Shown here one piece after another: positions 10,501-48,759 of a stretch of 64,000 nt of DNA. Location: sequence record LR745206.1; one strand, 5' to 3'. The notes beneath the pieces were generated by a model. That model saw only the letters and a program-made list of their open reading frames with translations, was not told the DNA's origin and did no database searches. The translations under genes and the position numbers were made by a program. Each line of letters begins with the position of its first letter. Within the stretch, counting starts at the first letter, position 1.

Positions 10501-10761
10501 TTATTTTTCTATCCAAGCCGCTGCTGTTTCAGTACCAGCAGTAACTTCTGTTAAACCTAAATCTTTTTGTATATATGGATTACAACCATTTTCTATAGCA
10601 TCCAATATTAAATTCGTGAATTTTGTTTGTGATACTTTTAATACCACTATGATACAATCCGGTGGTGTCTCACCTAGGTTTTTAACAGCGTGTGCTATTT
10701 GTGAAGCTACTTTCTGCTCAGACATTTTAAGATTGTGTGGGTATATCGCTTTTATTCTCAT
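10501..10761 (-). CDS. peptidyl-tRNA hydrolase type 2 (PTH2)-like
   Basis: LKMSEQKVASQIAHA, IVVLKV and DLGLTEVTAGTET match PTH2 motifs; start moved to MRIKA. Confidence 0.75.
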   Translation of the reverse strand: MRIKAIYPHNLKMSEQKVASQIAHAVKNLGETPPDCIIVVLKVSQTKFTNLILDAIENGCNPYIQKDLGLTEVTAGTETAAAWIEK

Positions 10762-10994
10762 ATTCCTAATTCTTTCAATTTTTGATCTCTTATAAAGGAT
10801 GGTGTGGTATTCTCCGCCCATTCCCCATTATAGTAAATATAGCCTCCTTTACCATCAGTGAGTGCTCCTTTGTGATTACTATTATAAATATACTCAGTTG
10901 GCATAAAATATAACTTACAATCTTTTTTACTCTTAGCGCAATTATAAGTTGTGATGGATCTTTCACATTCTTGTCCATCACTACCAGGCACCAT
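10758..10994 (-). CDS. hypothetical protein, C-tag
   Basis: Ends IRDQKLKELGI; frame open 24 more codons upstream. Confidence 0.65.
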   Translation of the reverse strand: MVPGSDGQECERSITTYNCAKSKKDCKLYFMPTEYIYNSNHKGALTDGKGGYIYYNGEWAENTTPSFIRDQKLKELGI

Positions 10995-11066
10995 TATACC
11001 TTCTTCGAATCCTAATTCTTTAGCCTTCTCTAAGAGTTCTTTTAGTGTTTCACCACCTCTTTTTTC

Positions 11067-11459
11067 TTAGTTTAGTTGATAAACAGCAATATCCTTCAAT
11101 ATACTTTGTAGTCTTGATTCCCTTTTATGTAAAGGTGATTTGAAAATTGATTCATGTGACCATTGAACTACTTGAGCAATTGATCCATATCCTATTTTCT
11201 GTGATTTGGTATATTTAGAAAATGGAATAGCGTTATATTTTTCACTGAAATTACCCCATTTATAACCATCAATATATTTATGATAACATGAATACTCTTT
11301 TGTTCTAAATTCCACTTTATCATCTATGTGTCTAACTAGTCGAAGATGTCCAATTTTTATAAATCCAAATATTTCCTTATCCATTATTAGGACACAAATA
11401 TTCAAATTATCATGAAACTCAAGTGATTTTATTTTATACCAAATAGGAAACCTAACCAT
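11067..11459 (-). CDS. hypothetical protein, C-tag
   Basis: KRESRLQSILKD; start moved to MVRFP. Confidence 0.65.
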   Translation of the reverse strand: MVRFPIWYKIKSLEFHDNLNICVLIMDKEIFGFIKIGHLRLVRHIDDKVEFRTKEYSCYHKYIDGYKWGNFSEKYNAIPFSKYTKSQKIGYGSIAQVVQWSHESIFKSPLHKRESRLQSILKDIAVYQLN

Positions 11460-11460
11460 A

Positions 11461-11757
11461 CTATATCCACCTAGATTTCCATTTAACATTTTTCTTAGCC
11501 ATCATATTCATTAAATCCTCATATGTTATTCCATACGTATCAATTAATGATATAACACACTGGATTGTATCAGCAGCTTCTTCACAAATTAAGTCTATAA
11601 CTTCTTCCTTAGAGGTTGTATTTACTTTTCGACCTATTGACTTGTTAACAGCTTGTGCTAACTCCCCTGACTCTTCAAACAGCTTACAGAGTCTTTCTGC
11701 CGGTCCTACTTGATCCAATTTATTGATTTCTTGAATCTCTTTGTATAATTCTTTCAT
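11461..11757 (-). CDS. mazG: MazG-like nucleotide pyrophosphohydrolase
   Basis: KLFEESGELAQAV ... EEAADTI acidic helix motifs. Confidence 0.85.
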   Translation of the reverse strand: MKELYKEIQEINKLDQVGPAERLCKLFEESGELAQAVNKSIGRKVNTTSKEEVIDLICEEAADTIQCVISLIDTYGITYEDLMNMMAKKNVKWKSRWI

Positions 11758-12239: not shown

Positions 12240-12243
12240 AATA

Positions 12244-13004: not shown

Positions 13005-13010
13005 ATTAGT

Positions 13011-13381: not shown

Positions 13382-13383
13382 AG

Positions 13384-13644: not shown

Positions 13645-13659
13645 TTTATTATATTTTTC

Positions 13660-17613: not shown

Positions 17614-17925
17614 TTTTTATTTTTTATTTGTTTTTGTTTACCTACTCTGTTAGGGATTTTCAGTTATCTCCCACTAAAATCTTTTTTATCCCCATAGAAA
17701 TATGGAGGTTAAGATTTAGTAAATTAAAAAAGGTGATATAAAATTATTTATTCATGCGTTGAATGATATATATATTACGATGGAAATATTTAAAAGGTAG
17801 CTTTTTTGACGAAAAATCAAAAAAAATTTTACCGTCTTCGACAGGTCTCAAAAAATTTTTAAACTCAGACATCAGAAATAATCACACAAATTAGAATACA
17901 AATAAATATAAATAATATATAGATA

Positions 17926-21132: not shown

Positions 21133-21663
21133 ATGATAACAAATATAAAAAACGGAAACTTAACGGATAAAGGAATGGTTAAGATGGTGGATAATCCTTG
21201 GAATGATAAGGATGGTAATCCAGTTGATAGAATAGTAACAACCACACAGGGCGCTTTTAGAGAAAGTGAATTAACCATTATCGAAAAAGCTGAAAAAACA
21301 ACTAAACCAATTAAAGAACTTATTGATTTCAACACGGCTATGTCTGTTGATATAAGACCTGGTAGAGTTACTATGGCTAAAAGAGTACCAAAGACTGATA
21401 AACTATTACATCTTGTTATCAACACATCATTAGGTACAAAAAACGTAGTTACTAATTTAGGTGGTCAATTCGAACCAGAAGTATTTGTTGGTAATACATT
21501 TATGTTTATTGTAAATATGCCATCTGTTAAGATGAAAGGAATAGAATCAGAAGCTATGATATTAGCTAATGAGGTTGAAGTTTTCAACCCAAACGAAAAT
21601 TCATGGTCAACAGTCACCAAACTTATGAAAGTAGATTTACCAATAAACTCAACAATACTATAA
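21133..21663 (+). CDS. tRNA-binding OB-fold protein (Trbp111/CsaA/MetRS C-terminal-like) with extra N-terminal domain
   Basis: DIRPGRV..AKRVPKTDKLL..FIVNMPSVKMKGIESEAMIL. Confidence 0.85.
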   Translation: MITNIKNGNLTDKGMVKMVDNPWNDKDGNPVDRIVTTTQGAFRESELTIIEKAEKTTKPIKELIDFNTAMSVDIRPGRVTMAKRVPKTDKLLHLVINTSLGTKNVVTNLGGQFEPEVFVGNTFMFIVNMPSVKMKGIESEAMILANEVEVFNPNENSWSTVTKLMKVDLPINSTIL

Positions 21664-23006: not shown

Positions 23007-23360
23007 ATGATTACACCTGAGTTATTAACAGATACAGTTTTGGAATGGTTTGATAGTTTGGATTATGAGTATATGATACTACATATACTTGTGTCTTATG
23101 GTTTATACTTCTCTAAAAATATGAAATGGGTATCAGATAAACTTGGTGGTCTACCATATTCTGTTTGGTGGGTTGGTGGTATATTAGCAATTATTGAAAT
23201 GTGTAGATTTTTACCATATTTTGGTGAGAATGATCTATCAATTCAAAAAATGGTTAGTATATTTCACTCATTTTTATTGATACAAGTTTTTGTAGAGGAT
23301 ATTGTACGTAACCTTAATAAATGGATTAATATGTTTAAGAGGTCTGAGAAGTCTGATTAA
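23007..23360 (+). CDS. membrane protein (holin-like possible)
   Basis: About 3 TM segments; TAATATATA at 22994-23002. Confidence 0.5.
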   Translation: MITPELLTDTVLEWFDSLDYEYMILHILVSYGLYFSKNMKWVSDKLGGLPYSVWWVGGILAIIEMCRFLPYFGENDLSIQKMVSIFHSFLLIQVFVEDIVRNLNKWINMFKRSEKSD

Positions 23361-24192
23361 ATTTTACCCAAGTTTCAATATTTGAAAATTCTGATATATC
23401 AAAACTTTCAAATTTCTTAATTCTAGATAATTTATTCTTCCACATCTTTTCTAAAAATAGTAATTTATTCTTATCTATTTTACAGTTTCTATTTGAAATG
23501 TTACCTTCGTTGAAAAGACTTATCATTTCATCCATAGTTAATGTTTTGTGGTGTTTATCAAAGTTTGGATCTGGATGTGACCAACCAAATTTAACTAACC
23601 AATTTAACAAAGCCTCTTTACTAAAGTCTTTGTAATCTTCTGTTGTTCCATTTCCTGTTCTTTTTGATAGTTTTTTATTACCCTCAAATAAAAGACCAGC
23701 ATGTGTTATTTCTGGAAATTTTTTATCACCTTCAACTTCACATATTTTATCCCATATTAGCTTTTGTTTTGGTTCATTAGAAACATGATCCACTCCCCTC
23801 ACTATGTTTGTTACATCATAATCATAATCATCTAATATAGAAGAGAAGTTATAAGTTGGGAATCCATTATTTCTGAGTATAACCATTTTATAGTCACCCA
23901 TATCCAGTTCATATCCGTTATCAGTCTTGGTTCCTATTTTCTCAGCAACTTCTTTATATCTATCTAATCTTTCTGATTGTCTAAAAGTTATATCATAATC
24001 TAACCCAAAAGCACTCATTTGTTCATAGATATAATCTATCCATTCTGGTCTATTTCTTTCTTGGTCAGTATCATCGATACGTAAAATGAAAGTACCATTA
24101 TTAGCACGAGCCATTAAATAATTAAGCAATGCTGTTCTTAAAGTACCTAGGTGAAATTCTCCTGTTGGAGAGGGTGCTATTCTTGTTACCAT
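23335..24192 (-). CDS. gltX: minimal glutamyl-tRNA synthetase-like protein (catalytic domain only, GluQ-sized)
   Basis: RIAPSPTGEFHLG, RIDDTD, RGVDH, KLSKR; 285 aa, no anticodon-binding domain. Confidence 0.85.
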   Translation of the reverse strand: MVTRIAPSPTGEFHLGTLRTALLNYLMARANNGTFILRIDDTDQERNRPEWIDYIYEQMSAFGLDYDITFRQSERLDRYKEVAEKIGTKTDNGYELDMGDYKMVILRNNGFPTYNFSSILDDYDYDVTNIVRGVDHVSNEPKQKLIWDKICEVEGDKKFPEITHAGLLFEGNKKLSKRTGNGTTEDYKDFSKEALLNWLVKFGWSHPDPNFDKHHKTLTMDEMISLFNEGNISNRNCKIDKNKLLFLEKMWKNKLSRIKKFESFDISEFSNIETWVKFNQTSQTS

Positions 24193-30016: not shown

Positions 30017-31972
30017 TTAAACTTTCTCGTAATGTGAGAAGACCATATTATAATCACCTCTACCAGAAGTTATTGTTCTTAGGTTAGTCATATAACCAAA
30101 CATCCTAGATATAGGAACGGTGCCGGTGATATATTTCAATTCACCCTTATTATCCATTTCGGATATAATACCTTTCCTCTTACTAAAATCACTAACAACT
30201 CCACCAACATAATCTTCTGGTGTTATGATATTAGTATTCATAATAGGCTCCAATAAACAAGGATCACATTTTTCCAAAGCTGATCTAAATGCTAACTGAG
30301 CTACCATTTCAAATGAGTAAGCATCAGAGTCAACATTATGATAACTACCATCAAGAAGTCTAACTTTAAGATTTTGAACAGGGTAACCAAAAGCACCATT
30401 ACTCAAACAATTCTTAAATCCTTTTTCAATAGCTGGTATATACTCTTTTGGAATATTACCACCAGTAACTTCATTGATGAATTGTAAACCTTCTACATCA
30501 TCATCAGCAGGTCCAATCTCAATAGAGATATCGGCAAATTTACCCTTACCACCAGTTTGTTTACTCAAAACCTCTTTGTGTAAAACAGTTTTCTGTAATC
30601 TTTCCTTATGAGCAACCTTAGGGACACCCTTAGTAACCTCAACACCAAAATCGGTTTGTAATCTACTTATAATAACATCAAGGTGTAACTCACCCATACC
30701 ACTAAGAATAGTCTGACCAGCTTCATTACTCTTAACTATAAGAGTTGGATCCTCTTCCGTTAGCTTAGATAAAGCAACTGATATCTTATCATAATCAACT
30801 TGAGTTTTTGGTTCGATAGCTATTGATATAACTGGGTCAGGAAAATTCATAGACATCAACTCCACAGGATTATCAACATCACAAATTGTTTGACCAGTGT
30901 TAGTATTTTTCAGACCAACAACCGTAACTATATCACCAGCTACCGCAACATCAACAGCTTTCTTATTTTGAGCATGCATCTGGAATATTCTAGATATTCT
31001 TTCATGTTCATTCGTATAAGGATTCAAAACAACATCACCTGGTTTTAATTGACCGGAGTATATTCTTATGAACGTAAGTTTTCCATGTTTATCAGTCATA
31101 ATCTTAAATACCAAAGCACTAAATGGATCCTCTACTCTATTACCTTTATCTTCTGGACTAGGTAATATATTAATAATAGTATCCAATAAAGTTTGAACTC
31201 CTTTGTTCTTAAAGGCAGAGCCACAAAGAACCGGGATAGCTAAGTTATTAAGGCAAATATCATGTAGAGCCTCATTAATACCATCAACAGTAACTTCATC
31301 ATTCAAATAAGACATCATAAACTTATCATTAAGATCAGATATCTGCTCCAACATAATACTTCTATATTCTTTAGAAATATCAATCATATGATCTGGTATA
31401 GTTTCGATGGAAACAACTTCACCCATCTCACCTGATTGTTTTATAGCAACCATATTTATTAGGTCAATAATACCTTCGAAGTCTGTCTCAGCACCAATTG
31501 GTAACTGTATAGCAATCGGATTAGCATTAAGTCTTTCTCTTATTTGTTTACACACCGATAAGAAGTCAGAACCAACTCTATCCATTTTATTAACAAACGC
31601 AACACGACTCACACCATACTCATTGGCTAATCTCCAATTCGTTTCTGATTGAGGTTCGACACCATCAACAGCAGAGAAAAGGAATACTAAACCATCAAGA
31701 ACTCTTAATGATCTATTTACCTCAACTGTAAAGTCAACGTGACCTGGGGTATCAATGATATTAATTTTATTATTGTTCCAATAGCAAGTTGTAGCAGCCG
31801 AAGTAATTGTTATACCACGGTCTCTTTCTTGAACCATATGGTCCATAGTTGTATTACCATCATGTACTTCACCAATTTTGTGATTTACACCTGTGTAATA
31901 AAGAATTCTTTCGGTTAGGGTTGTTTTACCTGAGTCGATGTGGGCGACGATGCCTATATTTCTTGTTTTCAT
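30017..31972 (-). CDS. fusA: elongation factor G
   Basis: [42 protein letters not shown]; ATG at 31972. Confidence 0.97.
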
Positions 31973-32059
31973 AATTTTCAAATTTTTATTTAAACCAACA
32001 TCTTCCGAAGCCTCTCTTATGAGAAGTTGTTAATTTTGTTAATAAAGTTTAGGGAATAA

Positions 32060-32094
32060 AAATTTAGTCAATCACCAAGGATTTGGGTGATTGA
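32060..32094 (-). terminator. terminator-like hairpin in the fusA leader
   Basis: TCAATCACC/GGTGATTGA stem 1 nt after the leader stop, followed by AAATTTTT. Confidence 0.6.
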
Positions 32095-32095
32095 A

Positions 32096-32131
32096 TTATA
32101 AAACAGCTCGTATGATAATTACGTTTTTCAT
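32096..32131 (-). CDS. putative fusA leader peptide MKNVIIIRAVL
   Basis: Hand-translated; between TATATTTG (32176-32183) and the hairpin. Confidence 0.65.
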   Translation of the reverse strand: MKNVIIIRAVL

Positions 32132-32194
32132 TATTCGTTATATATTACTTTCGTAAATAGTTTATTTTCCGATTACAAATATAAGAAAATAAAC

Positions 32195-33613
32195 TTAAAT
32201 CCTGTCAAATAAAATTTGTTTTTTACAACCTTCGATAACATTTAAAAATTCATTAGTCTTTTCAACGCCAAATAATGGTATGTATAATGTATTAACAACC
32301 AATAATAGTGAATATAAATTAGATAACTCAACTTCATAATTTTCGGAAGCCCAAGGTTTATTATCATTTATATATTTGTTTGCAAATTTAACCAATTCAT
32401 TAGTCTTACATAAAGCATCTTTAACTTTAAAGTTATCCCATAAATCTACAACAGAATCTTTATAACTATTTATTGTATCATTGAATGAATCTTCTGGTAA
32501 ACAATTTGGTCTGCGACCACATTTTATATCAATTAAATGTAATACTCTTGATACTAAATTTCCCCAATCATTTACAATTTCAGAATTCCATATTTGTTTA
32601 AGTTCATCATCATCCCAAGATGAATTAGCATAAGTATTTAATCTAAGAGCATAATACCTAACTGGGTATAATCCATACTTATCTAATTGATCAATTGGAT
32701 CTACAACATTACCAATTGATTTGGAAATCTTACGACCATCTTTATCGAGAATAGTACCATGAACTAGTAATTTATCGGTGTGTTTTATATTCTCAGCTTC
32801 TAGAAAGGATTGAAATATAACTCCCTGGAACCTTATATTATCTGGTCCACAGAGTTGTATAACTCTATTCCAGTTGAAATTATCTGTTAGATACCCAGCA
32901 GCGAAGATGTAATTGAGTAAAGCATCAAACCAGACATAAATAACTTGGTCTTCGTCATTTGGTACAGAAACACCCCAAGGGCAATTCTTTCTTACTCTAG
33001 ATATAGATATATCATCAGAATCTATAATTAGATTCCTTAATTCGTTTATTTTTGATATTGGTTCTAAGAACGTTGGATTATTTTCAATCCATTTTAGTAG
33101 TGAGTCTCTGTACTTAGATAATCTAAAGAAATAATTTTCCTCATCTACTATTTTTATTTCGGTTGTTGTATGATCTTGGCATTTACCATCCACCAATTCG
33201 GAATCTTTTTTAGCTGATTCACATCCAACACAATATTTACCCTTATATGAGCCTTTGTATATATCACCGTTGTTTAAGAATTTTGTCCAAATGGATTGCA
33301 CTTTCTCGTGGTGAGAGATGTCAGAGGTTTTATAAAAGGAATCATAGTCTATGTTAAATTTAACACAAAAGTCCTTCCAAGACGTTGTTAGGTTGTTTAT
33401 ATGTTGTTCTGGTGTTATACCAAGCTCTTGAGATTTCTCCCAGACTTTCAAACCATGTTCATCCAATCCAATGTTAAAATGAACATCATTTTTAATTTTA
33501 AACCATTTTGAAAGAGCATCTCCCAATATAAATTCGAAAGCGTGTCCAATATGTGGAACTGAGTTCACATATGGTAATGTTGTTGTTATAAATATATTTT
33601 CTGCGATTTCTAT
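32195..33613 (-). CDS. metG: methionyl-tRNA synthetase lacking the C-terminal OB domain; probable AUA start
   Basis: FITTTLPYVNSVPHIGH, YCVGCE Zn knuckle, YVWFDAL, KISKS; no in-frame ATG before the first motif. Confidence 0.9.
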   Translation of the reverse strand: MEIAENIFITTTLPYVNSVPHIGHAFEFILGDALSKWFKIKNDVHFNIGLDEHGLKVWEKSQELGITPEQHINNLTTSWKDFCVKFNIDYDSFYKTSDISHHEKVQSIWTKFLNNGDIYKGSYKGKYCVGCESAKKDSELVDGKCQDHTTTEIKIVDEENYFFRLSKYRDSLLKWIENNPTFLEPISKINELRNLIIDSDDISISRVRKNCPWGVSVPNDEDQVIYVWFDALLNYIFAAGYLTDNFNWNRVIQLCGPDNIRFQGVIFQSFLEAENIKHTDKLLVHGTILDKDGRKISKSIGNVVDPIDQLDKYGLYPVRYYALRLNTYANSSWDDDELKQIWNSEIVNDWGNLVSRVLHLIDIKCGRRPNCLPEDSFNDTINSYKDSVVDLWDNFKVKDALCKTNELVKFANKYINDNKPWASENYEVELSNLYSLLLVVNTLYIPLFGVEKTNEFLNVIEGCKKQILFDRI

Positions 33614-33906
33614 GTTTTTTTAAATAATAAATAATTCAATCTAATTTCTCTAATAACTGGTTTTAATAAATCTAACATTTCTTTATCACATTCAAATTTA
33701 TCACCTATTTCAGTATTATATATGTAATGTATTTCTCCTGTGTCAAAATTACCACTATCTTCTTCTAATATATTGTTCTTTATTAGGTAATAAACAACCG
33801 AATTGGGTATTTTTATTGCCTTTTTTCGTGGATGCCACTTACTTAATATACAATTTAATGTTGGTTCGATAGTTAGTTCTCGACCATAAAATATCTCTTT
33901 CAGCAT
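33610..33906 (-). CDS. hypothetical protein, C-tag
   Basis: IREIRLNYLL; TAG overlaps candidate ATA start of metG. Confidence 0.65.
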   Translation of the reverse strand: MLKEIFYGRELTIEPTLNCILSKWHPRKKAIKIPNSVVYYLIKNNILEEDSGNFDTGEIHYIYNTEIGDKFECDKEMLDLLKPVIREIRLNYLLFKKT

Positions 33907-34127
33907 TAAAATACAATAAAATAATCAAATATACTCATTCTATCCTCTTTAAGTAAAGATACACTCAATGGTACTTTTATATCATTATCATTATCTAGAA
34001 TTTTAATATTTTCATCTAGAATATCAAGTATTTCATAATCCACACCAGGTGTTAAAAGCTTACTAAATTGTTTTTTACATCTTATTAGCTTACCAATCTT
34101 TATCTTTTCACTTTTAATTTTTACCAT
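33906..34127 (-). CDS. 73-aa paralog family member 2
   Basis: IKSEKI.IG..I.C..LLTPG.DYEI..SIFDYF. Confidence 0.75.
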   Translation of the reverse strand: MVKIKSEKIKIGKLIRCKKQFSKLLTPGVDYEILDILDENIKILDNDNDIKVPLSVSLLKEDRMSIFDYFIVF

Positions 34128-34342
34128 ATTTGAAAATATCTGAAAATATTTGGACTTTCACTTTTATTCATCGACATAGACAAAGGGAAAGTTCTATCAT
34201 TTTCATTGTCCATTATGAAAATACTATCATCTGTAATTGAGATTATCTCATAATCCAATCCAGTTGTTAATAAAACAGCCATTGGTGTAATACATTTGAG
34301 TTTTTTACCAACAGCTATGTTTTCACTCTTAATTAATATCAT
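34121..34342 (-). CDS. 73-aa paralog family member 3
   Basis: Tandem paralog of the adjacent gene. Confidence 0.75.
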   Translation of the reverse strand: MILIKSENIAVGKKLKCITPMAVLLTTGLDYEIISITDDSIFIMDNENDRTFPLSMSMNKSESPNIFRYFQIW

Positions 34343-34377
34343 TTGTGTTTAATTTATACAAATATAAGGAAAATTAA

Positions 34378-35709
34378 TTATATTTCATAAATAATATTAA
34401 ATATTGGTTCCAAGTCCTCTATGATATACTTTAATGTAATTGATGTTGGTTTTGTTTTTGATGATTCTATCCACTCATCACAGAATAGATTCCAGAAAAA
34501 CTTATATAATAAATCATTAGCGATGCTAAGATCCATATTATCAAAAGCATTTAATATATCAGATTTATATTGTGACCAAATCTCTATTAATTTATCATCC
34601 TCTCCTATCCATTCGTTATCAATTTGTATTTGAATGAACTTCTTAGCGTTCTTAAACTTATTACTCATCTTCCAACCCATTCTCATCTTAGACTCATCTA
34701 TCTTAGTGTCCATACCCAATGTACCAGATGTTGACCAACTTCTTATACCATTAGCACCATATCTATCTATTAAAGGTTTTGGTGGTGTTGCATTACCACT
34801 CGACTTACTAAACTTATCACCGTTACCATCAAGTGTATGTCCTGTTATCATAATACTTTTCCAAGGTATTTGGTTATTTAAAAAGTAGGACATAGCTATT
34901 GTATAGAATGCCCAAGTTCTAATAATATCATGTGATTGAAATCTCATATCAAATATAGGACACTCTAAAGATGGTATTCCGGTGTGAGCTGACCAAGCTA
35001 ATTGTGGTGTTAGTGCTGATATAAACCAAGTATCGAACGTGGATGTTTCACCAGGAATCATAATTCCGAAATTTCTCTCTCTTGATATTGACCAGTCCCA
35101 TTTGATTTGTTCTAACCAATCATCTGCTCTTTTTTTGTGAGAGAAGGGTTTCCAATCTATCTTGTCTATCATTTCTTTTATTTTTGGTAAATGATCTTTT
35201 ATATTTATAAACCAGCCTTCACCAGTTTTTATTAAAGGAATCTCACCAGTTCTTTCGATTATCCCATCATCATTTAGTTCTGATTGTGATATAGATGTCT
35301 TTAATTTTTCTGACCATAAATATTCAGTTGTTGCTTTATAAGCAATTCCTCTTTCTTTTAATTTCTCAAATGCCATATAAGCAATATTAATTGATTGGTC
35401 ATCATAGGTATAATATCTTTGTTCACCAAAATTAATACCTGATAGATTAAATGTGTCATGATAATCTTTTGACTTGTTTATTGAGAAATCAATAATATTT
35501 TGTGTACCCTTTATTCCTTTGTTTGATGCAAGTTTACCAGTTGGTATTCCGTTGTTGTCAAAACAGAATGGATAAATTAAATTTTTACCAAGATATTTTT
35601 GATATCTAGCAATTATATCTCCTTGTGTATAAGAGAATATATGACCTATGTGTAGGTTACCACTTATTGTAGGTGGTGGTGTGTCGATTAAATAATTGTT
35701 TGTTTTCAT
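34378..35709 (-). CDS. valS: minimal valyl-tRNA synthetase (443 aa; CP1 editing region and C-terminal coil missing)
   Basis: DTPPPTISGNLHIGH, DWSISR, FDTWF, DIIRTW, KFSKS; Val-rich leader supports Val specificity. Confidence 0.9.
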   Translation of the reverse strand: MKTNNYLIDTPPPTISGNLHIGHIFSYTQGDIIARYQKYLGKNLIYPFCFDNNGIPTGKLASNKGIKGTQNIIDFSINKSKDYHDTFNLSGINFGEQRYYTYDDQSINIAYMAFEKLKERGIAYKATTEYLWSEKLKTSISQSELNDDGIIERTGEIPLIKTGEGWFINIKDHLPKIKEMIDKIDWKPFSHKKRADDWLEQIKWDWSISRERNFGIMIPGETSTFDTWFISALTPQLAWSAHTGIPSLECPIFDMRFQSHDIIRTWAFYTIAMSYFLNNQIPWKSIMITGHTLDGNGDKFSKSSGNATPPKPLIDRYGANGIRSWSTSGTLGMDTKIDESKMRMGWKMSNKFKNAKKFIQIQIDNEWIGEDDKLIEIWSQYKSDILNAFDNMDLSIANDLLYKFFWNLFCDEWIESSKTKPTSITLKYIIEDLEPIFNIIYEI

Positions 35710-35731
35710 GTTTATAATTTTATAATTTTTT

Positions 35732-35852
35732 AAAATAAAAAACCCGACATATCTTTTGATATGTCGGGTCGAGTGAGTTATATAATAGCTATTCCAACAT
35801 ATCAGACTGATACATTGACAACCACTAAGTTATTTAAATTTATTGTTTTCAT
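35732..35852 (-). promoter_or_regulatory. Val-sensing transcription attenuator of valS
   Basis: Leader ORF, alternative 1:2, 2:3 and 3:4 pairings; 12-bp terminator ACCCGACATATC/GATATGTCGGGT plus U-tract. Confidence 0.9.
35802..35852 (-). CDS. valS leader peptide MKTINLNNLVVVNVSV
   Basis: 5 Val in the last 7 codons (GTG GTT GTC GTA GTC); promoter TATATTTG at 35869-35876. Confidence 0.88.
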   Translation of the reverse strand: MKTINLNNLVVVNVSV

Positions 35853-35900
35853 ATTCTTTATATATCTACAAATATAATTAAAGTTTTTCACTTTTCAAAA

Positions 35901-36356
35901 TTATTTAGTGAATTCTATTTTGATGTGTTTGAATCCAGCATTTGATCCATCATAATTAAAATTTATATATCTATCTCTAAATATATCAAGAAACTCACCC
36001 AATCTTTTCTCACTAAGGTATTGGAACATTAAACAACCATTATTTAAATGATTATCATTATACAAAGTAGCGTCAACTCTCATTATCCACCTTCTATCTA
36101 TGACCATATAATAGTATAGTCTTTCAATAACATCAACAACTTCATCACCTCCAAATGTCTCTCTATCTTGATATACTCTATCTGGGAAAATATTAACATT
36201 TAGAAACGCTGTTCTTGAAGTCCAAGTTGAACTACCATATTCATGACACTCAGTTTTATACTTTAGATTACTATCCGAAAGTTCCATACAGATTTCATCA
36301 ACTATCTCTAATTCACCATCTTCTTTTTTCTCGTTATATGATTTTATATGTTTCAT
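35901..36356 (-). CDS. DIKDILLEL-family protein, N-tag
   Basis: MKHIKSYNE; IVDEICMELSD. Confidence 0.75.
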   Translation of the reverse strand: MKHIKSYNEKKEDGELEIVDEICMELSDSNLKYKTECHEYGSSTWTSRTAFLNVNIFPDRVYQDRETFGGDEVVDVIERLYYYMVIDRRWIMRVDATLYNDNHLNNGCLMFQYLSEKRLGEFLDIFRDRYINFNYDGSNAGFKHIKIEFTK

Positions 36357-37469: not shown

Positions 37470-37892
37470 TTAAATGTCTAATAATTTCTTCAATGCTGAG
37501 TTACGAGCAATCATAACCTTTAGATGTTCGGTGTTATAAACCCATTCACCAAATACTGATCCAACTATTCTATTATTACTACCAACCTTTTCTCTTGTGT
37601 ATCCAGGTTCACGGTATAGATATTTTATCACAACTGATTTAGCATTTTTCTTAATTACTTCAACTCTATCACCTCTTCGTAAACCACCTTGTCCCCAATA
37701 AGGGTTAATCCCCGTATTAAATTCAATAACATCACCTATTTCTATATAATCTAGTACTAATGTAAAAGATGATTGTTTTTTATCTATTTTCAATGATTTA
37801 TTAATCTTTCTCAAATTGGAAATTTCAGCTTCCTTACAACGTATTATATCGTTGTTTGTATTGATTAATTTTTGTATCTCTTCTGGCTTCAT
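37470..37892 (-). CDS. hypothetical protein, C-tag
   Basis: Coil plus SH3-like segment; ARNSALKKLLDI. Confidence 0.7.
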   Translation of the reverse strand: MKPEEIQKLINTNNDIIRCKEAEISNLRKINKSLKIDKKQSSFTLVLDYIEIGDVIEFNTGINPYWGQGGLRRGDRVEVIKKNAKSVVIKYLYREPGYTREKVGSNNRIVGSVFGEWVYNTEHLKVMIARNSALKKLLDI

Positions 37893-38338
37893 TAGATTAT
37901 TATCTCCTTATTTGTTTTGGATTTTTTAACCTTATGTGCTTTTTTGGAACTACTCAACATAGAATATAACCAAGCATCATGATTAGCTAGAGCTCTCTTA
38001 TCACTTTCCATTTTTTTAACTAAATCAGACCTTGTTGTTCCTTTTAATTGGTGATAAACAACTTGCCCAGATTTGGTATCCATTATAATAACAGACTTAG
38101 TATCTAAATAATCTCTTAGTCTATCAGACAATTCCCAATTCTTATTATTCCTAGCCTTTTCTCTTATATCAATAAGTTCGTCTATATAATAATCATCTAA
38201 ATTATCTAGACTTCTCTTATCAACCAATAAACTCGCTGCGTTTTCTAAAGCATCTTTCCAATCTTTGTTAGAGTGTTGAGCTTTTAATTTATAACCCTCA
38301 CTAACTAATTTCTTTAATATTTTTCTTATATCACTCAT
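37892..38338 (-). CDS. protein with a CysRS C-terminal (anticodon-binding)-like domain
   Basis: LIDIREKARNNKNWELSDRLRDYL...IMDTKSG matches the CysRS C-terminal signature. Confidence 0.7.
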   Translation of the reverse strand: MSDIRKILKKLVSEGYKLKAQHSNKDWKDALENAASLLVDKRSLDNLDDYYIDELIDIREKARNNKNWELSDRLRDYLDTKSVIIMDTKSGQVVYHQLKGTTRSDLVKKMESDKRALANHDAWLYSMLSSSKKAHKVKKSKTNKEIII

Positions 38339-38896: not shown

Positions 38897-39214
38897 TAAT
38901 TTATCATTGAGTATTTGTATAAGTTCTTTTTGATAATATTTATAAATGTCTTTTATATCTAGGACTGATAGTTTATTATTGTATCTACTTCCTATATTAT
39001 CAACTATAATTTTTTTGTGTTTATTTTCCATCACATAGATATTATCTGACCATTCCAACATCCATTCTTCTAATAGAGTTGTTCCTTCTTTATTACAAAT
39101 TTTGTGATTTGTACCAGCAGACATAAATGATATCTCTGGATACTTCAAAGAGAAGTAATCATCAGCGGTTTTTGACCGTTGTTTATTAGCTGAGCATATA
39201 AATAAAACATTCAT
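38885..39214 (-). CDS. low-molecular-weight phosphatase-like protein
   Basis: NVLFICSANKQRSKTA (CX5R P-loop), SAGT, IYVME. Confidence 0.85.
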   Translation of the reverse strand: MNVLFICSANKQRSKTADDYFSLKYPEISFMSAGTNHKICNKEGTTLLEEWMLEWSDNIYVMENKHKKIIVDNIGSRYNNKLSVLDIKDIYKYYQKELIQILNDKLSFE

Positions 39215-39765
39215 TATTCAATACAACATTTTTTATATTTCTTACCTGATCCACAAGGACAAGTAACATTTCTTTCTATTTTAATATTCTTAATATCAAC
39301 ATTACCTTCTCGGACATCTTCTTCTATACCGTTAAGATGATTAATTTCATGTTGCCAAACTTGAGCTTCGAATCCGGTCACCTCAATCTCCTTCATTTCA
39401 CCATCAGATGTGTGATACTCAACAATAATCCTATGATTTCTTTCAGCTACTATTGTTTTCCCTATCCAGGTCAAACAACCTTCTGATTTAGTCCTAACCA
39501 TACCCAATTTTTGTTTTATTATCGGGTTTATTATTATAGACCATTCGTTGGTATTTAAATCCATTTTACCAAACATCCTTTTCATTATTCTTTCACCATT
39601 CAATGATGCTTGATTAGCGGCTAACCCAGCCGCATTGGGTAGTGTTTTAACATAGTTTAAGAACGAATCGATTAGTTCCTTGTTTTCTGAAATAAAGTCT
39701 CTTACATCAGTTATTTCAGGAACCGATGGTGTTTGTTCATCTTTGATTATATCAAAATTATTCAT
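39214..39765 (-). CDS. def: peptide deformylase with C-terminal SEC-C motif
   Basis: GLAANQ, EGCL, QHEINHLNG; CPCGSGKKYKKCC. Confidence 0.93.
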   Translation of the reverse strand: MNNFDIIKDEQTPSVPEITDVRDFISENKELIDSFLNYVKTLPNAAGLAANQASLNGERIMKRMFGKMDLNTNEWSIIINPIIKQKLGMVRTKSEGCLTWIGKTIVAERNHRIIVEYHTSDGEMKEIEVTGFEAQVWQHEINHLNGIEEDVREGNVDIKNIKIERNVTCPCGSGKKYKKCCIE

Positions 39766-40135
39766 CTAATATTTTTTTAATTTTACTATCTCTCAATTTT
39801 TGAGAATTGCTATCATACCATATAATTCTACTAGTTGGTACCCAATCATTATGTCCCCAATATCTTAGTATTTTGGATTGATCCTGTTCAGACCTTCTAT
39901 CTGGTATAACTTTGTGTAATTTTATTTTAGTTCTATCACCAGCAGTATCTAATTCCTCAACTTCAAATACAGCATACATTGATTGATAATCATTATCATA
40001 TCTGATAATACCCATACGACCAGTTCCTTCATTAAGTGTTTCACTTATGAAGGTTTTGTACCTTTTTTTACCCATCTTATATCCAAATATAAAAAGTATA
40101 GGTAGTAAAGTTAATAATATTATTTGTAAAATCAT
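39758..40135 (-). CDS. membrane-anchored protein, C-tag
   Basis: N-terminal TM; LRDSKIKKILDE. Confidence 0.7.
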   Translation of the reverse strand: MILQIILLTLLPILFIFGYKMGKKRYKTFISETLNEGTGRMGIIRYDNDYQSMYAVFEVEELDTAGDRTKIKLHKVIPDRRSEQDQSKILRYWGHNDWVPTSRIIWYDSNSQKLRDSKIKKILDE

Positions 40136-40746
40136 TATGCTAATTCTAAAGCTGGTTGAATTTTCTCTTTAATAACATCAATCAATACTTTGTGTGTATC
40201 TGTTAATGTTCTATTGTTTTCTAGAGCATCTACGATATTTTTTGTTTGGTATGAATATTTAACCGCCCATTTAATATCAGAATTTTTACCACTGTCAATT
40301 TTTGATTGAACATCTGATAAGTTATGAATTCTATCTGATAGTTTGATAACAAGACCCCAGGTGGACATATTAGACATCTTATTAATTAAGTATTGCTCTT
40401 TTCCATATTGCTCTAACCCTTTTGGATCCGATGTAAGTTCTTCTACTAGAGAAGCTATTAAATCACCAAATTCGTCTCTAATTACGTCTATTGTTACCCA
40501 ATCTACGTCCTCAACGGTATCATGTAACATACAAACCGCTACTAATACCGCTATCTTATGTGATTTCTTATATTTATGTACAATTTTACCAACAGCAACT
40601 GGGTGAGTTATATACTCTAACCTATTACCATTCTCGTCTTTACCTTTACGATAAACACCTTTATGCGCATTTGTCGCGAAAACTCTAGCTCTCTTAACTA
40701 AAGAAACAAAGTCTGTGAATCGTGATATGTCATTATTGTTGTTCAT
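40135..40746 (-). CDS. HD-domain small alarmone hydrolase (SpoT/Mesh1-like)
   Basis: YITHPVAV, LHDTVED, IKLSDRIHNL; no synthetase domain; start moved to MNNNND. Confidence 0.88.
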   Translation of the reverse strand: MNNNNDISRFTDFVSLVKRARVFATNAHKGVYRKGKDENGNRLEYITHPVAVGKIVHKYKKSHKIAVLVAVCMLHDTVEDVDWVTIDVIRDEFGDLIASLVEELTSDPKGLEQYGKEQYLINKMSNMSTWGLVIKLSDRIHNLSDVQSKIDSGKNSDIKWAVKYSYQTKNIVDALENNRTLTDTHKVLIDVIKEKIQPALELA

Positions 40747-40769
40747 GTTACAAATATACGAATTTTTAA

Positions 40770-41483
40770 TCAATTAATGGAATTATATTTAAAATATTTA
40801 ACTACCATTTCGTGCTCTGGTTGATTAGTTTTAATATAATCTTCTTGTATTGAGTTATTAATTATAACATTCATTTTTTTACCCCTGAACTGACTTATTG
40901 TTTTTTCATCATTTATGGTTCTAACAACCCTATCATTAAATAGTATCTTTATTTCACTTTCTGTCCAAACACATCCATATTTATTAAATGTTTTATTAGG
41001 TCTCTTCCAACCCAACCAATGTGATTTAGCACCCATCATATAATTATTTGGGGAATTTCCAAGATGTATATTTGAATTAACTGCCCAGAATTTACCAATA
41101 AGCGAACGAAGTGACCAGTTAAAATAACTTCCCTTTTTATTACTGTAACCTTCGAATACATCTATCTCTGGTGGCCATGAATCAAACGACCACATCCAAA
41201 AAGCTGGCCAAGTATATGGACCACTTGGTAACTTAGCAACTATTTCAAATTTACCATATCCAAATTCGGTAGTGCAAGATATCAATCCCGTACCAATTGG
41301 TATTTCGATGTTTCCCTTATCAGTAATAAAAAAATTAGGATTTGGTCTTGTTTTTAGTCTAAGTGTTTGATCAGTATCAATCACTACTGCTGATGGATCA
41401 TACCATACAATTGGTTTGTCTGGATGGAATTGTCCCCATCTTTCATTTGTCAACCATTCATAACCTTGCCATTTAATATTCAT
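40770..41483 (-). CDS. glycoside hydrolase family 16
   Basis: GYGKFE, WPAFWM, EIDVFE catalytic motif. Confidence 0.85.
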   Translation of the reverse strand: MNIKWQGYEWLTNERWGQFHPDKPIVWYDPSAVVIDTDQTLRLKTRPNPNFFITDKGNIEIPIGTGLISCTTEFGYGKFEIVAKLPSGPYTWPAFWMWSFDSWPPEIDVFEGYSNKKGSYFNWSLRSLIGKFWAVNSNIHLGNSPNNYMMGAKSHWLGWKRPNKTFNKYGCVWTESEIKILFNDRVVRTINDEKTISQFRGKKMNVIINNSIQEDYIKTNQPEHEMVVKYFKYNSIN

Positions 41484-45908: not shown

Positions 45909-45925
45909 CTTATTAAATTTAAAGA

Positions 45926-47752
45926 TTAATAAATTTTAATTGATTTATCAATATCGTTATTGAATATTCTGATTATAGAAATCTGACCTGGTCTATTAAC
46001 TCTATATCCTGATTTTATATTCACATTACTATCACTAAGTATCACTTGACCCAACATATTATAGATAACAACATTAACTGTCTCTGATTGGTTTGACTTT
46101 ATAATAATTTGATCATTATCATATAACACTTTTATACTATCATCGTTGTTTATTTCCGCCACATTTACCGAACTACCAGCAAATAGGTGAATTATGAATC
46201 TATTAGTATAATTTATGTTACTTCCTATAAATGGATATCCAGTTGTTAAAGTGCTTATTTGTGTCATACTATTATCAGATAAATCTTCAAGATAAAGGTC
46301 ATAATGTGGTTCCCATGTAACTAAATCATTGAAATATAAAGTTCCACTACCAATAGTATAAACAGGAATGGATGATGTGGAATCATTTATTGAATTTATT
46401 GAATACATTACTGTATCGGTGTAGAATTTTGAATAGATTCTAGAACCATCACCCATAAATTTATAAGCATCAAAATCTGAATTGAAACTGGAATTTGTTA
46501 AATCATTAGCTCTTATTATAATTTCATCATCACCAAGAGATACTCTTAGAATATTATCCAATGGGTTTGATGATTTTAATAGCGTTGTTGGGTTTGATGT
46601 TATTACTCTACTTTTTGATGTTAGTGAGGGTGAAGTATTATTGGTTTTTATATAAAATCCCTGAAATGTTGATATATACCTATCACCACCATTCACACCA
46701 ATACTACCAACATATGATGAATATGTTTGGTTACAAGTGTTGAATTCATAAATAGCGTTATCCACATTTGTTCTAACCCATCCAATATCATCCCAATCAA
46801 TAACACCTGGGTATGGGTTAGAAACTAGATTCCAACCATCTGATGTTATATCACCTGTGTTTGTGTATTGAATAGGGAAACTAAAAGTGCTTGTAAAATC
46901 GATTGTTCCTTTAGTTGCTACTTTCCATTTTTGTTGTATTGGTGGACCACTACTGTTGAACACTGTATCGGAATTCCAATACCAAAATCCGGTACCTCTA
47001 GCTAATGTCACATTTCCGTTTGGTGTTACCCAACCTTGTGCTGGTGTATTCCAATTTTCATCCCAAAGCCAAGTGTTTGTCCATCCGAAAGTTGGATAAT
47101 CAGAATTTGGAAAATTCGTATATATCATTTGTCCTGTAGCGCTATCAGCATACTCATTAAGTGTAGCATCAAAAGGTCCACCATATAATGACCAATTATT
47201 ACATCTATCTACCCATTGTTCGAAAATAAAACTACCTATGATATTGTCATTATTTCCTATACCAACTAATCTACCAGTGTATATAGAGTCACCAACGATT
47301 GTTAACATCCCACTAGTAACATCCAAAATACCATTTTTTATATCAAGATCATTTCTAACCCATATACTATCATTAACAAAAACAGTCTTATTCATCTGTA
47401 ATGTTAGATTAAAAAATTTTGTGTTACCAGTTAGTTGGTGATTTGTATTATTTCTGAAAAGAACTTCACCAGATGTATCTGTATATGTTCCATTTTTTAT
47501 CCAATCTCCATCAACTCTTAATTGATAACCACCATTAATTAAGGTTCCATTAATTGTAATATTTTTAAGCCTATCGTTTTGATTAAGTGTTATGGTATGA
47601 TTGATAATTGCGTTATCGTTGTTACCAGGTACACCGTTACTCCAATTAGAAGCATTGTTCCAGTTACCAGATGATACAGTTGTTGTGTTCGCTGAGAACA
47701 TTATACTTGGTATTAATAATACCAAGAATAGAAATGTTAGTATTTTCTTCAT
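45926..47752 (-). CDS. secreted protein with T9SS type A-like C-terminal domain
   Basis: Signal peptide; SSGNWNNASNWSNGVP; GWNLVSNPYPGVIDW; VIYNMLGQVI..KIY; TAATATATA at 47757-47765. Confidence 0.8.
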   Translation of the reverse strand: MKKILTFLFLVLLIPSIMFSANTTTVSSGNWNNASNWSNGVPGNNDNAIINHTITLNQNDRLKNITINGTLINGGYQLRVDGDWIKNGTYTDTSGEVLFRNNTNHQLTGNTKFFNLTLQMNKTVFVNDSIWVRNDLDIKNGILDVTSGMLTIVGDSIYTGRLVGIGNNDNIIGSFIFEQWVDRCNNWSLYGGPFDATLNEYADSATGQMIYTNFPNSDYPTFGWTNTWLWDENWNTPAQGWVTPNGNVTLARGTGFWYWNSDTVFNSSGPPIQQKWKVATKGTIDFTSTFSFPIQYTNTGDITSDGWNLVSNPYPGVIDWDDIGWVRTNVDNAIYEFNTCNQTYSSYVGSIGVNGGDRYISTFQGFYIKTNNTSPSLTSKSRVITSNPTTLLKSSNPLDNILRVSLGDDEIIIRANDLTNSSFNSDFDAYKFMGDGSRIYSKFYTDTVMYSINSINDSTSSIPVYTIGSGTLYFNDLVTWEPHYDLYLEDLSDNSMTQISTLTTGYPFIGSNINYTNRFIIHLFAGSSVNVAEINNDDSIKVLYDNDQIIIKSNQSETVNVVIYNMLGQVILSDSNVNIKSGYRVNRPGQISIIRIFNNDIDKSIKIY

Positions 47753-47755
47753 ATT

Positions 47756-47995
47756 TTATATATTAATAAATTTGTTGTATAATTTCTCATTTTTTCCACA
47801 CCAATAAACAAACTCTATAAATGTGTAATGTCTATGTGGGTGTGGTGATATAATAGATCGTCCTGTGATTATACACCAATGGTTCGAATATATATCATCA
47901 TTCACACGATTAAGTATTTTCAACTCTCTTGTGAACTTTGGTAACTTTAGATATTCTTCATATCCTGATTGTAATTTTTCCTCAAATTTATTCAT
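47756..47995 (-). CDS. hypothetical protein
   Basis: 79 aa; TATCTTTG upstream. Confidence 0.65.
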   Translation of the reverse strand: MNKFEEKLQSGYEEYLKLPKFTRELKILNRVNDDIYSNHWCIITGRSIISPHPHRHYTFIEFVYWCGKNEKLYNKFINI

Positions 47996-48030
47996 ATATA
48001 TTTTTTAATTTACAAAGATAAGGAAAAATA

Positions 48031-48060
48031 AAAAACCCACCATTTTTGGTGGGTTTTTTA
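48031..48060 (-). terminator. terminator after the release-factor gene
   Basis: AAAAACCCACCA/TGGTGGGTTTTT abutting the TAA stop. Confidence 0.85.
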
Positions 48061-48759
48061 TTAGGATTTATTTTTATGTAAGGATTTAATCTGACCCTTG
48101 TACAACTCTTTAATTGTTATTCTTTTATTTGTGATATGATCCAAAACCCACCCATCTTGTTCTCTATATGTTCGTCTTTTATCATTTCTGTTACCATATC
48201 CGATTTGGTTGAATCTAGCTTCTTTTATTTCATCATTTTTAGAACTATCATTAATTGATTGTAATTTTTCCTCTAACCTCTTCCAAGCAGCTTCTTCGTT
48301 TTTACCTTGTGTTCTGCTTTCCTCTGAACGCACCATTATACCACTTGGTTTATGTAATAGTATAACACAAGTTGATCTTCTGTTGACATTTTGACCGCCT
48401 TTACCACCAGAGCAGGTATATTGACGCTCTACATCACCTTTATTAATAATAATTTTTTGATTTTGATTTTCGTTCATAACCGCAACTGTTACAGTGCTTG
48501 TTTGAACTCTACCTCTTTTTTCAGTTGGAGGTATTCTTTGCCATCTATGTCCACCTACTTCGTTCTCAAAGAACTTACCGACTCCGTTTCCAGTCAGTCA
48601 TATCGAGACATATCCTGGTATTCAGTGTTCTACTTTATAGGAGAATCCGTTTAGGTTAGCAGTCTTTTTATAGATATCTGCCATATCATTTACAAGAAGT
48701 TTGGCATCTTCACCACCTTCAGCTGCTCGAAGTTCGAGTTTAATTGTTTGTGTTTTCAT
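48061..48759 (-). CDS. prfA: RF1-like peptide chain release factor (232 codons, no domain 1) with two in-frame TGA codons
   Basis: Hand-translated LELRAAEGGEDAKL...VEH*IPGYVSI*LTG...GGHRWQRIPPTEKRGRVQTSTVTVAV...GGKGGQNVN; TGA at 48624-48622 and 48600-48598. Confidence 0.9.

Follow-up and report, generated by a model that had tools for sequence, protein, structure and literature searches.

Translation genes are a known feature of huge phages, and our analysis bears on why they are carried and when they are used. The DNA that we analysed, a stretch of 64,000 nucleotides (the window), is identical to bases 1-64000 of LR745206.1, the unannotated genome (634,780 bp) of an uncultured phage that passages of Al-Shayeb et al. 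2020 (PMC7162821) place in the 'Mahaphage' set. The phage is a huge phage of Bacteroidota and the window its translation-gene-rich part: the GC content of the window (29%), window proteins with type IX secretion system (T9SS) sorting domains and a recurring promoter-like motif of the -7 type all fit a Bacteroidota host. A preliminary description of the window had proposed that four genes, encoding a mini valyl-tRNA synthetase (ValRS; valS), elongation factor G (EF-G; fusA), methionyl-tRNA synthetase (MetRS; metG) and a release factor (RF) resembling RF1, carry separate sensors and form one rescue regulon. Passages of Al-Shayeb et al. 2020 (PMC7162821) report aminoacyl-tRNA synthetases (aaRS), EF-G, peptide deformylase, RF1/2 and many tRNAs in the same genome set and propose that these phages intercept host translation. 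Because such genes were thus already published, any novelty is confined to their cis features; leaders, attenuators or in-frame stops of these genes are not described in the searched passages of that paper. The remainder of the LR745206 genome was retrieved and scanned besides the window, and the more interesting result lies partly beyond the preliminary description: what looks like a genome-wide attenuator rule for several synthetases, together with an apparent, conserved requirement for UGA readthrough in an RF1-type gene.

Leader regions of valS and other synthetase genes

Upstream of valS, a promoter-like motif, a short leader open reading frame (ORF), an antiterminator and an intrinsic terminator follow one another on the minus strand (Table 1). 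Valine accounts for five of the final seven leader codons, in a VVV-N-V-S-V tract. The terminator stem contains 6 GC pairs, lies 31 nt from the valS ATG and, called at 35770-35741, was the top minus-strand terminator in a scan of 29.5-49.4 kb. The leader RNA folded with a z-score of -4.8 versus shuffles, hairpin 1 spanning the Val codons and hairpin 2 being the terminator. A cognate-codon upstream ORF (uORF), an intervening terminator and a mutually exclusive antiterminator at the leader stop are all found at valS, and the leader, as read from its sequence, has the textbook 1:2 / 2:3 / 3:4 attenuator geometry. When the window was compared with Rfam, only a tRNA and the DUF805b motif reached the gathering score and nothing significant was found in 31900-36000, so that no curated leader or T-box matches there; the best score for the valS leader was that of the trpB motif RF04312 (29.6 bits vs 59).

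These features argue strongly for the mini-ValRS gene being under a Val-specific leader-peptide attenuator. RNA polymerase would begin at the host-type promoter and transcribe the 16-codon Val leader. When Val-tRNA is plentiful, the ribosome at the leader UGA would mask the antiterminator, the 13-bp terminator would form and transcription would end 31 nt short of valS. Under a shortage of Val-tRNA, it would stall at the Val codons, allowing the antiterminator to pair with the terminator 5' arm, and valS would be transcribed. The architecture and its conservation are observed; the valine response is modelled on the trp/his/pheST paradigm. As to the promoter, a complete TTTG-N19-TAnnTTTG match lies upstream of the valS leader at 35869-35899. 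The shorter motif TTATNTTTGTA occurs in 8 copies in the window versus 1.6 expected (0/100 shuffles reach 8), with 7 of the 8 on the minus strand. The promoter role of the TTATATTTGTA/TTATNTTTGTA motif is proposed by analogy with the known Bacteroidetes consensus.

Homologues of mini-ValRS (66-85% identity) were gathered from IMG/VR, metagenomes and one contig of a metagenome-assembled genome (MAG). Val-rich leaders were present in 13 further mini-ValRS loci, 12 of which keep the VVV core (the exception, L014, has VIV), and a contig ending inside the leader region retains the terminator. In most of these 13 loci an antiterminator at or beside the leader stop matches the terminator; the same antiterminator position and pairing was found in L010, L062, L075, L011 and L070 (each p <= 0.01), giving six loci when the window is counted. 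Terminator and antiterminator covary between valS loci (GATATGTTGG/CCGACATATC, GATGTTGG/CCAACATC and TCTGGTG/CACCAGA), and in L115, where the terminator is wholly different, the antiterminator segment is changed to match. The Val leader noted in the preliminary description is thus borne out by conservation in 13 further loci and by covariation. It was absent in distant high-GC mini-ValRS homologues. Among 185,579 species genomes there was just one close cellular match to mini-ValRS; because this sole match is a 3.9-kb MAG contig, the mini-ValRS family looks phage-borne.

We considered whether the hairpin and T-run might merely terminate the upstream gene (35901-36356), the Val-rich uORF then being a chance ORF. 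The terminator does lie 130 nt downstream of the stop of that gene, but a promoter-like motif sits between the gene and the Val leader, and none was found within the 31 nt separating the terminator from valS. Moreover, Val-rich leaders (12 of them with VVV) are kept in 13 loci with differing upstream genes, in most of these along with a matched antiterminator, and four other aaRS genes are preceded by cognate leaders. Simple termination of the upstream gene is therefore very improbable, and attenuation of valS is the reading that we retain.

Separately, in three loci (L012, L063 and L068) the Val leader and terminator upstream of mini-ValRS homologues are replaced by an ORF ending …TAGGYIF. 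This ORF resembles a homing endonuclease, which suggests a mobile-element insertion at the Val leader.

The leaders of the other aaRS genes came from scans of the whole LR745206 genome. A strict rule (uORF, terminator and long ORF) returned 7 sites, among them four aaRS genes preceded by a cognate leader (Val, Ile, Asn and Phe-type), and a looser rule added a mini leucyl-tRNA synthetase (LeuRS). The Ile, Asn, Leu and Phe-type leaders are each accompanied by an intrinsic terminator. Inspection of three of these leaders showed the antiterminator overlapping the stop codon in the Asn and Phe-type cases and lying within the leader ORF in the Ile case. No such leader was found in LR745206 at MetRS, the core resembling glutamyl-tRNA synthetase (GluRS) or glutaminyl-tRNA synthetase (GlnRS), a candidate GlnRS 'leader' being dismissed as not Gln-rich. 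Cognate leader attenuation looks like a general rule that the phage applies to several of its aaRS genes. A literature search found no report of leader attenuators on phage-encoded synthetases, which is limited evidence of absence.

In-frame UGA codons of the mini-RF1 gene

The RF frame (48759-48061, minus strand) comprises 232 codons, with TGA at codons 46 and 54 and a terminal TAA. The 45-residue piece before the first TGA matches PCRF 100-139, and the piece after the second matches PCRF 158-194 and RF-1, while in an uninterrupted orthologue the PCRF match is continuous over 101-194. The RF-1 domain scored 85 bits, with GGQ within 'SGGKGGQNVN'. A PxT-type tripeptide, PPT, lies within 'RIPPTE' (PPT, PDT or PST in orthologues, PPN in one), suggesting RF1-type codon specificity. 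The best family was prfA (NF001859, 152.7 bits vs a cutoff of 400; TIGR00019, 139 vs 423), and the third piece (178 residues) aligned solely to prfA model positions 163-340. Domain 1 of the four expected domains is missing, so this is a mini RF1 and not a full-length factor. Assignment as an ArfB or PrfH rescue factor was rejected (ArfB, 38.8 bits vs 100; prfH, 49.8 vs 166.65). The 635-kb genome has no second RF-family gene.

We compared 12 low-GC RF orthologue sequences. An in-frame TGA is kept in 11 of the 12 (the exception being LR756511), which upholds the preliminary description on this point; one orthologue has an additional TGA at a third position. The frame is interrupted by TGA alone, with no TAA or TAG, and every one of these genes ends in TAA. 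Orthologues that lack TGA at a site encode S, K, V, I, D or Q there, and in no case W. The codons preceding the in-frame TGAs are AUA, AUU, AUC, CUG or CUA, and the base that follows is C in 8/16 and A in 8/16; C follows none of the 80 genuine TGA stops of long ORFs (0/80). UGA-C is the weakest bacterial termination context. Directly after site 2, CTG or CTA is found in 7 of 10 cases, CTG making up 1% of Leu codons in the genome. A candidate readthrough-stimulating hairpin after site 2 (48598-48577) was rejected, as by eye it was not kept in orthologues.

One could suppose that the gene is a decaying pseudogene, or that it yields nothing but a short GGQ-domain protein from the internal ATG 48477; indeed, the mechanical ORF call is just 138 residues (48061-48477). 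Against this, the stop positions are kept across orthologues of about 50% identity, with no frameshifts and TGA only, and both flanks score as coding in the RF frame (+12.8 and +12.2, versus -10.4 and -8.7 for the best other frame). Codons 1-54, both TGAs included, differ from an 80%-identical orthologue by 16 synonymous and 16 non-synonymous changes, a balanced ratio for this N-terminal region, and the internal Met is missing in 8 of the 12 orthologues. Both decay and an internal start are thus highly unlikely.

A code switch was weighed as a second alternative, in which UGA would become Trp late in infection, as has been proposed for TGA-recoded gut phages, and RF would be one 'late-coded' gene of a recoded set. 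In its favour, TGA recoding in Jade phages is accompanied by RF1 genes (bioRxiv 10.1101/2021.08.26.457843), and the LR745206 phage has a tRNA-Trp(CCA) with a 4-bp anticodon stem. On the other hand, TGA terminates 10 of 79 window genes, ATGA overlaps among them, and 47 of 312 long ORFs genome-wide (15%), often within ATGA overlaps; code 4, code 15 or other global recoding of the window was ruled out, the ORF statistics matching the standard code. ARAGORN found no tRNA(UCA) among 59 distinct phage tRNAs, TGG never takes the place of TGA at either RF site, and in Jade phages the RF1 gene itself is in standard code. Lastly, a best-of-six-frames screen of the 635 kb turned up no further TGA-bridged gene; to be called, a gene had to have 20 or more codons from an ATG before the TGA and 15 or more start-free codons after it. 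A first genome-wide TGA-interruption screen gave off-frame or antisense artefacts alone, as judged by eye. These data make a code switch unlikely.

Since pseudogene decay, an internal start and a general code switch are all argued against, the RF TGAs are best read as gene-specific programmed UGA readthrough, for which the sequence evidence is strong. Mini-RF1 would be made only if one or two conserved UGAs in a weak-termination context were decoded as sense, and its output would report the balance of host RF2 and a UGA-reading tRNA.

The hypothetical reader is the phage tRNA-Trp(CCA), which lies outside the window and has an A27·C43 mismatch atop its anticodon stem (Table 1). A tRNA-Trp(CCA) with a 4-bp stem promotes UGA readthrough in Escherichia coli (PMC13092985; 2026), and UGA-reading tRNAs of this type are described from Blastocrithidia, Condylostoma and Zinderia, with a C27A test in E. 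coli (PMC13092985). LR756502 has a diverged tRNA-Trp(CCA) with C27·C43, and BLAST with the two sequences located no tRNA-Trp in other Mahaphages. As a tentative and rather doubtful proposal, mini-RF1 could be a trans-wired counterpart of prfB, switched on by the phage 4-bp-stem tRNA-Trp(CCA) or by overloaded or disabled host RF2, and then taking over UAA and UAG termination. If true, mini-RF1 would cover the stops of 85% of the phage's long ORFs, and the phage would own a gene-specific, phage-timed recoding switch that leaves the genetic code unchanged. Together with the cognate attenuators on at least 5 aaRS genes, huge phages would then run demand-controlled back-ups of host translation.

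Two side observations concern relatives of RF and other tRNAs. In high-GC RF relatives from IMG/VR (L022-L029), the region before the 'GGVFEFE…HRWQRVPPTE' core is not in frame, with TGA, TAA or TAG stops, and the usual EGGxDA motif is missing, which may reflect a different N-terminus, a frameshift or another start. Odd tRNA-like genes occur at L057 364-437 and 12836-12923 and at L059 2344-2421, with an 8-nt anticodon loop (gtag), a 6-nt loop (gt) and a relaxed-threshold CTA candidate.

The fusA and metG start regions and the question of a regulon

The fusA gene is preceded by a uORF with a hairpin beginning 2 nt after its stop. Orthologous uORFs are MKTLIYIRAVV* in LR756502 (EF-G 72% identical) and MKTNRRIRAVV* in the IMG/VR locus L089 (EF-G 71%). 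The three phages agree on uORF length, on the IRAV[V/L]* ending, on a uORF-fusA spacing of 119-123 nt and on the hairpin, and the final five codons are kept at the amino-acid level, a synonymous CGA/CGC change included. Across the three sequences, 96% of cells in the hairpin are paired, with compensatory double changes in 3 of 9 pairs; slid by 1-3 columns, only 7-44% of cells pair. The element is real, its conservation being limited to a narrow clade. The hairpin does not qualify as a canonical terminator, because the T-run lies 6 nt past the stem and is poorly conserved, and the terminator scan did not call one. The leader that had been described before fusA therefore stands, being shared by three phages, whereas the terminator does not.

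The uORF and covarying hairpin before EF-G probably form a translation-dependent switch in the 5' untranslated region (5'-UTR): since uORF length is fixed and the hairpin begins 2 nt past the stop, a ribosome that has reached the end of the uORF would melt the hairpin. Alternatively, these parts might sense nothing and serve the stability or processing of the 5'-UTR, or encode a small peptide. The lack of a canonical terminator, the absence of a conserved alternative pairing of the leader among the relatives compared and the restriction of the element to 3 genomes are in line with such a passive element. In contrast, conservation of the last five codons as amino acids, and a fixed uORF length with the hairpin 2 nt after the stop, have the geometry of a translation-coupled switch. 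A non-sensing role is accordingly a possibility to be kept in mind, though we doubt it, and the translation-dependent switch is the reading we prefer. A pairing of the uORF end with the fusA start codon was discarded, having been seen in the window fold alone and not in relatives. Single-protein IMG/VR scans for EF-G and MetRS gave nothing; an EF-G alignment query gave one new close relative.

At metG, homology to MetRS begins 9-11 residues upstream of GTG 33568, and no ATG, GTG or TTG occurs in that stretch, where the in-frame start candidates are AUA or AUC codons only, with ATA at 33613. Alignments to the metG models begin at residues 7-9 when the translation is taken from 33619, and a start at GTG 33568 would delete the first beta-strand of MetRS. 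The MetRS orthologue of LR756504 begins MKAEIKIYITTT, and its ATG aligns exactly with ATA 33613, so that metG probably starts at AUA 33613. Translational coupling is the simplest reading, because this ATA and the TAG stop of the preceding ORF overlap (ATAG) and the three small ORFs upstream are chained by stop/start overlaps; MetRS would be translated by coupling to the upstream ORF from the AUA overlapping its stop. A -1 frameshift on an A7 run fusing ORF 33906-33610 to metG was dropped, as the orthologue ATG aligns with ATA 33613. The preliminary description was right about a non-AUG start. As a methionine sensor the start fails, since any start codon uses the same initiator tRNA, and the sole orthologue found has AUG; as the alignment has it, the non-AUG start is lineage-specific and not a sensor. 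The first two of the small upstream ORFs (about 72 residues each) are paralogous to each other, and none of the three has a Pfam match.

Taken together, it is reasonably probable that the spare parts are controlled in cis one by one, each independently of the others: attenuation at valS, readthrough at RF, a uORF switch at fusA and coupled translation at metG. The valS and RF genes are very likely expressed conditionally, each tied to its own translation step, because the attenuator is conserved and covarying and full-length RF depends on the decoding of conserved UGAs. The cis features are versions of known mechanisms, and their earlier interpretation is partly supported.

Several points weigh against this view. 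The phage is uncultured, and every response (to Val-tRNA, RF2 or tRNA-Trp) is deduced from sequence. Attenuation requires coupled transcription and translation by the polymerase acting at these promoters, which is assumed from the host-like motif alone, and the two-part TTTG-N17-21-TAnnTTTG promoter pattern shows no enrichment there (6 observed vs 3.8 expected in the window). At RF, two UGAs would let basal readthrough yield very little protein, so that a booster, at present hypothetical, would be needed; the TGA-bridge screen could also miss short or unusual interrupted genes. Positions 27:43 are unpaired in 8 of 59 phage tRNAs (14%), a feature thus not special to tRNA-Trp. The correlation of tRNA-Trp with TGA has n = 2 (LR745206 and LR756502). 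At fusA, the uORF of LR756504 is a different one with a true terminator behind it, a leader is lacking in LR756501, and a scan of IMG/VR with the hairpin pattern gave 0 matches, the element being known in 3 genomes.

The stronger proposal was that the four features act in a coordinated way as sensors of a single rescue regulon, which would detect the translation step hit by a defence and make only the needed part. Two of the four genes do carry conditional devices related to their step, the same extended promoter-like motif stands before valS, the metG operon and fusA, and many translation genes lie within about 38 kb. Yet the promoters are separate, no common regulator or operator was found, the metG start is not conserved, the fusA leader has no assigned signal, and synteny is not conserved, relatives having the genes scattered or lacking them. 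The RF, EF-G and MetRS genes of LR756504 lie at 568 kb, 66 kb and 223 kb. Other Mahaphage records lack a close mini-ValRS copy (the best other phage match has 27.5% identity), and no metG occurs in the 3 kb retrieved on each side of even an 81%-identical valS locus. As regards the co-conservation that had been proposed for survey, the valS leader and RF UGAs were conserved, the fusA element was confined to 3 phages, and the metG start and the gene clustering were not conserved. The attenuators would answer any ordinary shortage of amino acids or of tRNA charging, and the demand set up by the phage would suffice to cause one. The suggested role against abortive infection found no link to defence or anti-defence, no defence library having been searched. 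We consider a single regulon improbable and prefer independent cis controls.

Translation genes of the window and comparison with known systems

Gene families were assigned by Pfam and NCBIfam profile matches against curated cutoffs (Table 1). The gene list given earlier was matched in this way, though PTH2 is weak and the CysS_C-like fragment is under its cutoff. EF-G is full-length and passed the equivalog test, and the tetracycline ribosomal-protection model scored under its own cutoff; the gene starts at ATG 31972, not at a TTG, and the scan placed a terminator 3' of it at 30012-29988. The alignment of mini-ValRS to the valS model is broken into 3 stretches, the third beginning at model position 454, and from this fragmentary match we read the enzyme as lacking the editing domain.

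Table 1. Positions of the features discussed; numbers refer to the window (bases 1-64000 of LR745206.1) unless marked as genome or locus positions
Feature	Position	Strand	Basis or remark
PTH2-like peptidyl-tRNA hydrolase	10501..10821	-	PF01981, 27.9 bits vs cutoff 23; weak match
tRNA-binding domain protein (MetRS C-terminal / CsaA type)	21133..21663	+	PF01588, 51.8 bits; NCBIfam agrees
Truncated GluRS catalytic core, 285 aa, without anticodon-binding domain and without leader	23335..24192	-	gltX_bact, 221 bits vs cutoff 290; GluQRS models 127
EF-G, 651 aa	30017..31972	-	TIGR00484, 855.7 bits vs cutoff 659.4
9-bp hairpin, 2 nt after fusA uORF stop (TCAATCACC...GGTGATTGA)	32068..32094	-
fusA uORF MKNVIIIRAVL*, 11 codons + TAA	32096..32131	-
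Promoter-like motif TTATATTTGTA upstream of fusA leader	32174..32184	-	motif scan
MetRS core	32195..33613	-	metG models
Three small overlapping ORFs before metG	34342-34121, 34127-33906, 33906-33610	-	junctions ATGgTAA, TAATG, ATAG
Promoter-like motif before metG	34357-34367	-	motif scan
Mini ValRS, 443 aa, HIGH and KFSKS motifs	34378..35709	-	best NCBIfam valS, 328 bits vs cutoff 738
valS intrinsic terminator, 13-bp stem GACCCGACATATC/GATATGTCGGGTT and T-run	35733..35770	-	terminator scan
valS antiterminator UGAUAUGUUGGA, overlaps leader stop, pairs with terminator 5' arm	35793..35804	-	duplex -13.6 kcal/mol, shuffle p = 0.01
valS leader ORF MKTINLNNLVVVNVSV*, 16 codons + TGA	35802..35852	-	read from sequence
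Bacteroidota-type -7 promoter-like motif TTATATTTGTA upstream of valS leader	35867..35877	-	consensus likeness
CysS_C-like fragment	37892-38338	-	20.9 bits, under Pfam cutoff 23
Peptide deformylase with SEC-C motif	39214-39765	-	Pfam/NCBIfam
ORF without assignment between deformylase and HD_4 gene	within 39214..40773	-
HD_4 (SpoT/RelA hydrolase type) domain protein	40135-40773	-	Pfam/NCBIfam
Mini RF1	48061..48759	-	PCRF C-terminal half and RF-1 domain
In-frame TGA site 2, codon 54, then CTG	48598..48600	-	10/12 orthologues at same alignment column
In-frame TGA site 1, codon 46, next base A	48622..48624	-	5/12 orthologues at same alignment column
ValRS gene with cognate leader	genome 35709		MKTINLNNLVVVNVSV
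tRNA-Trp(CCA), A27·C43 mismatch	genome 343033-343104 (L055 34033-34104)		outside window
IleRS gene with cognate leader	genome 382047		MNFNTIIIIRYSIPWSIPIG; IIII core
AsnRS gene with cognate leader	genome 390522		MKTMTINNRNRLTDII; NN-N core
Mini-LeuRS gene with cognate leader	genome 404831		MINNNVNILLLPLT; LLL core; looser scan rule
PheS-related 'SrmL' ligase gene with Phe-type leader	genome 614897		MNTNTTFNFFFSHKMV; F-FFF core
Diverged tRNA-Trp(CCA) of LR756502, C27·C43	373501-373572 (L113 18502-18573)		relaxed ARAGORN threshold only

Some neighbouring features are worth recording. The C-terminal SEC-C metal-binding motif on the deformylase (39214-39765, minus strand) is an unusual fusion. Two large phage proteins, 15115-17613 (minus) and 25768-27966 (plus), carry CHU_C / T9SS C-terminal sorting domains and PKD/SprB repeats; local GC there is 0.36-0.39 versus 0.29 overall, and they may have been acquired recently from a host. 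The Rfam DUF805b RNA motif at 17639-17673 (minus; 38.2 bits vs a gathering score of 35.6) lies directly upstream of the first. A lone tRNA-Arg(TCT) is found at 3337-3411 (minus), the main tRNA clusters at 340-420 kb holding most of the 59 distinct tRNAs.

Cognate attenuators on phage aaRS genes would indicate on-demand synthesis when charged tRNA is short, and such synthesis directly supports a 'back-up during infection' role. An RF gene completed only via UGA readthrough would be an unusual translational logic, linking termination capacity to UGA decoding and possibly tied to a phage tRNA whose anticodon stem is shortened. The attenuator and the UGA device are also compact, portable regulatory parts from Bacteroidota, a phylum with few characterised.

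The valS element resembles the E. coli trp, his, ilvGMEDA and pheM-pheST attenuators in its cognate-codon short ORF, in its intrinsic terminator just upstream of the regulated gene, and in an antiterminator that competes for the terminator 5' arm and is masked by a ribosome finishing the leader. The classical synthetase example, pheM-pheST, is nearest to the phage valS design. Unlike the E. coli attenuators, the valS element is phage-encoded and would control a truncated ValRS read as editing-domain-less. It stands behind a Bacteroidota-type promoter, without a Shine-Dalgarno (SD) sequence, and its antiterminator overlaps the leader stop (…TC UGA U/G…), as in the phage Asn and Phe-type leaders and not the Ile leader.

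For the RF gene, Jade phages (Borges et al., bioRxiv 10.1101/2021.08.26.457843) offer a case in which a phage RF1-type factor is likewise associated with UGA as sense. Their code-change module consists of a suppressor tRNA, TrpRS and RF1, with RF1 in standard code and many late genes containing TGA (bioRxiv 10.1101/2021.08.26.457843). Here, in contrast, an in-frame TGA is found in the RF gene only and is otherwise a normal stop, tRNA(UCA) is lacking and the features of code 4 are absent. The 4-bp-stem tRNA-Trp(CCA) systems are paralleled by the unpaired 27:43 of tRNA-Trp in LR745206 and LR756502, UGA reading being hypothetical for these two tRNAs. In prfB (RF2), as in mini-RF1, a release-factor gene is broken early by a conserved in-frame UGA, so that yield depends on UGA termination. 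Unlike in prfB, the mini-RF1 frame is unchanged across the TGAs, with no +1 frameshift at CUU UGA, and there are one or two UGAs. Since a PxT-type factor is predicted not to read UGA, the mini-RF1 loop would run via host RF2 or a UGA-reading tRNA instead of being autogenous.

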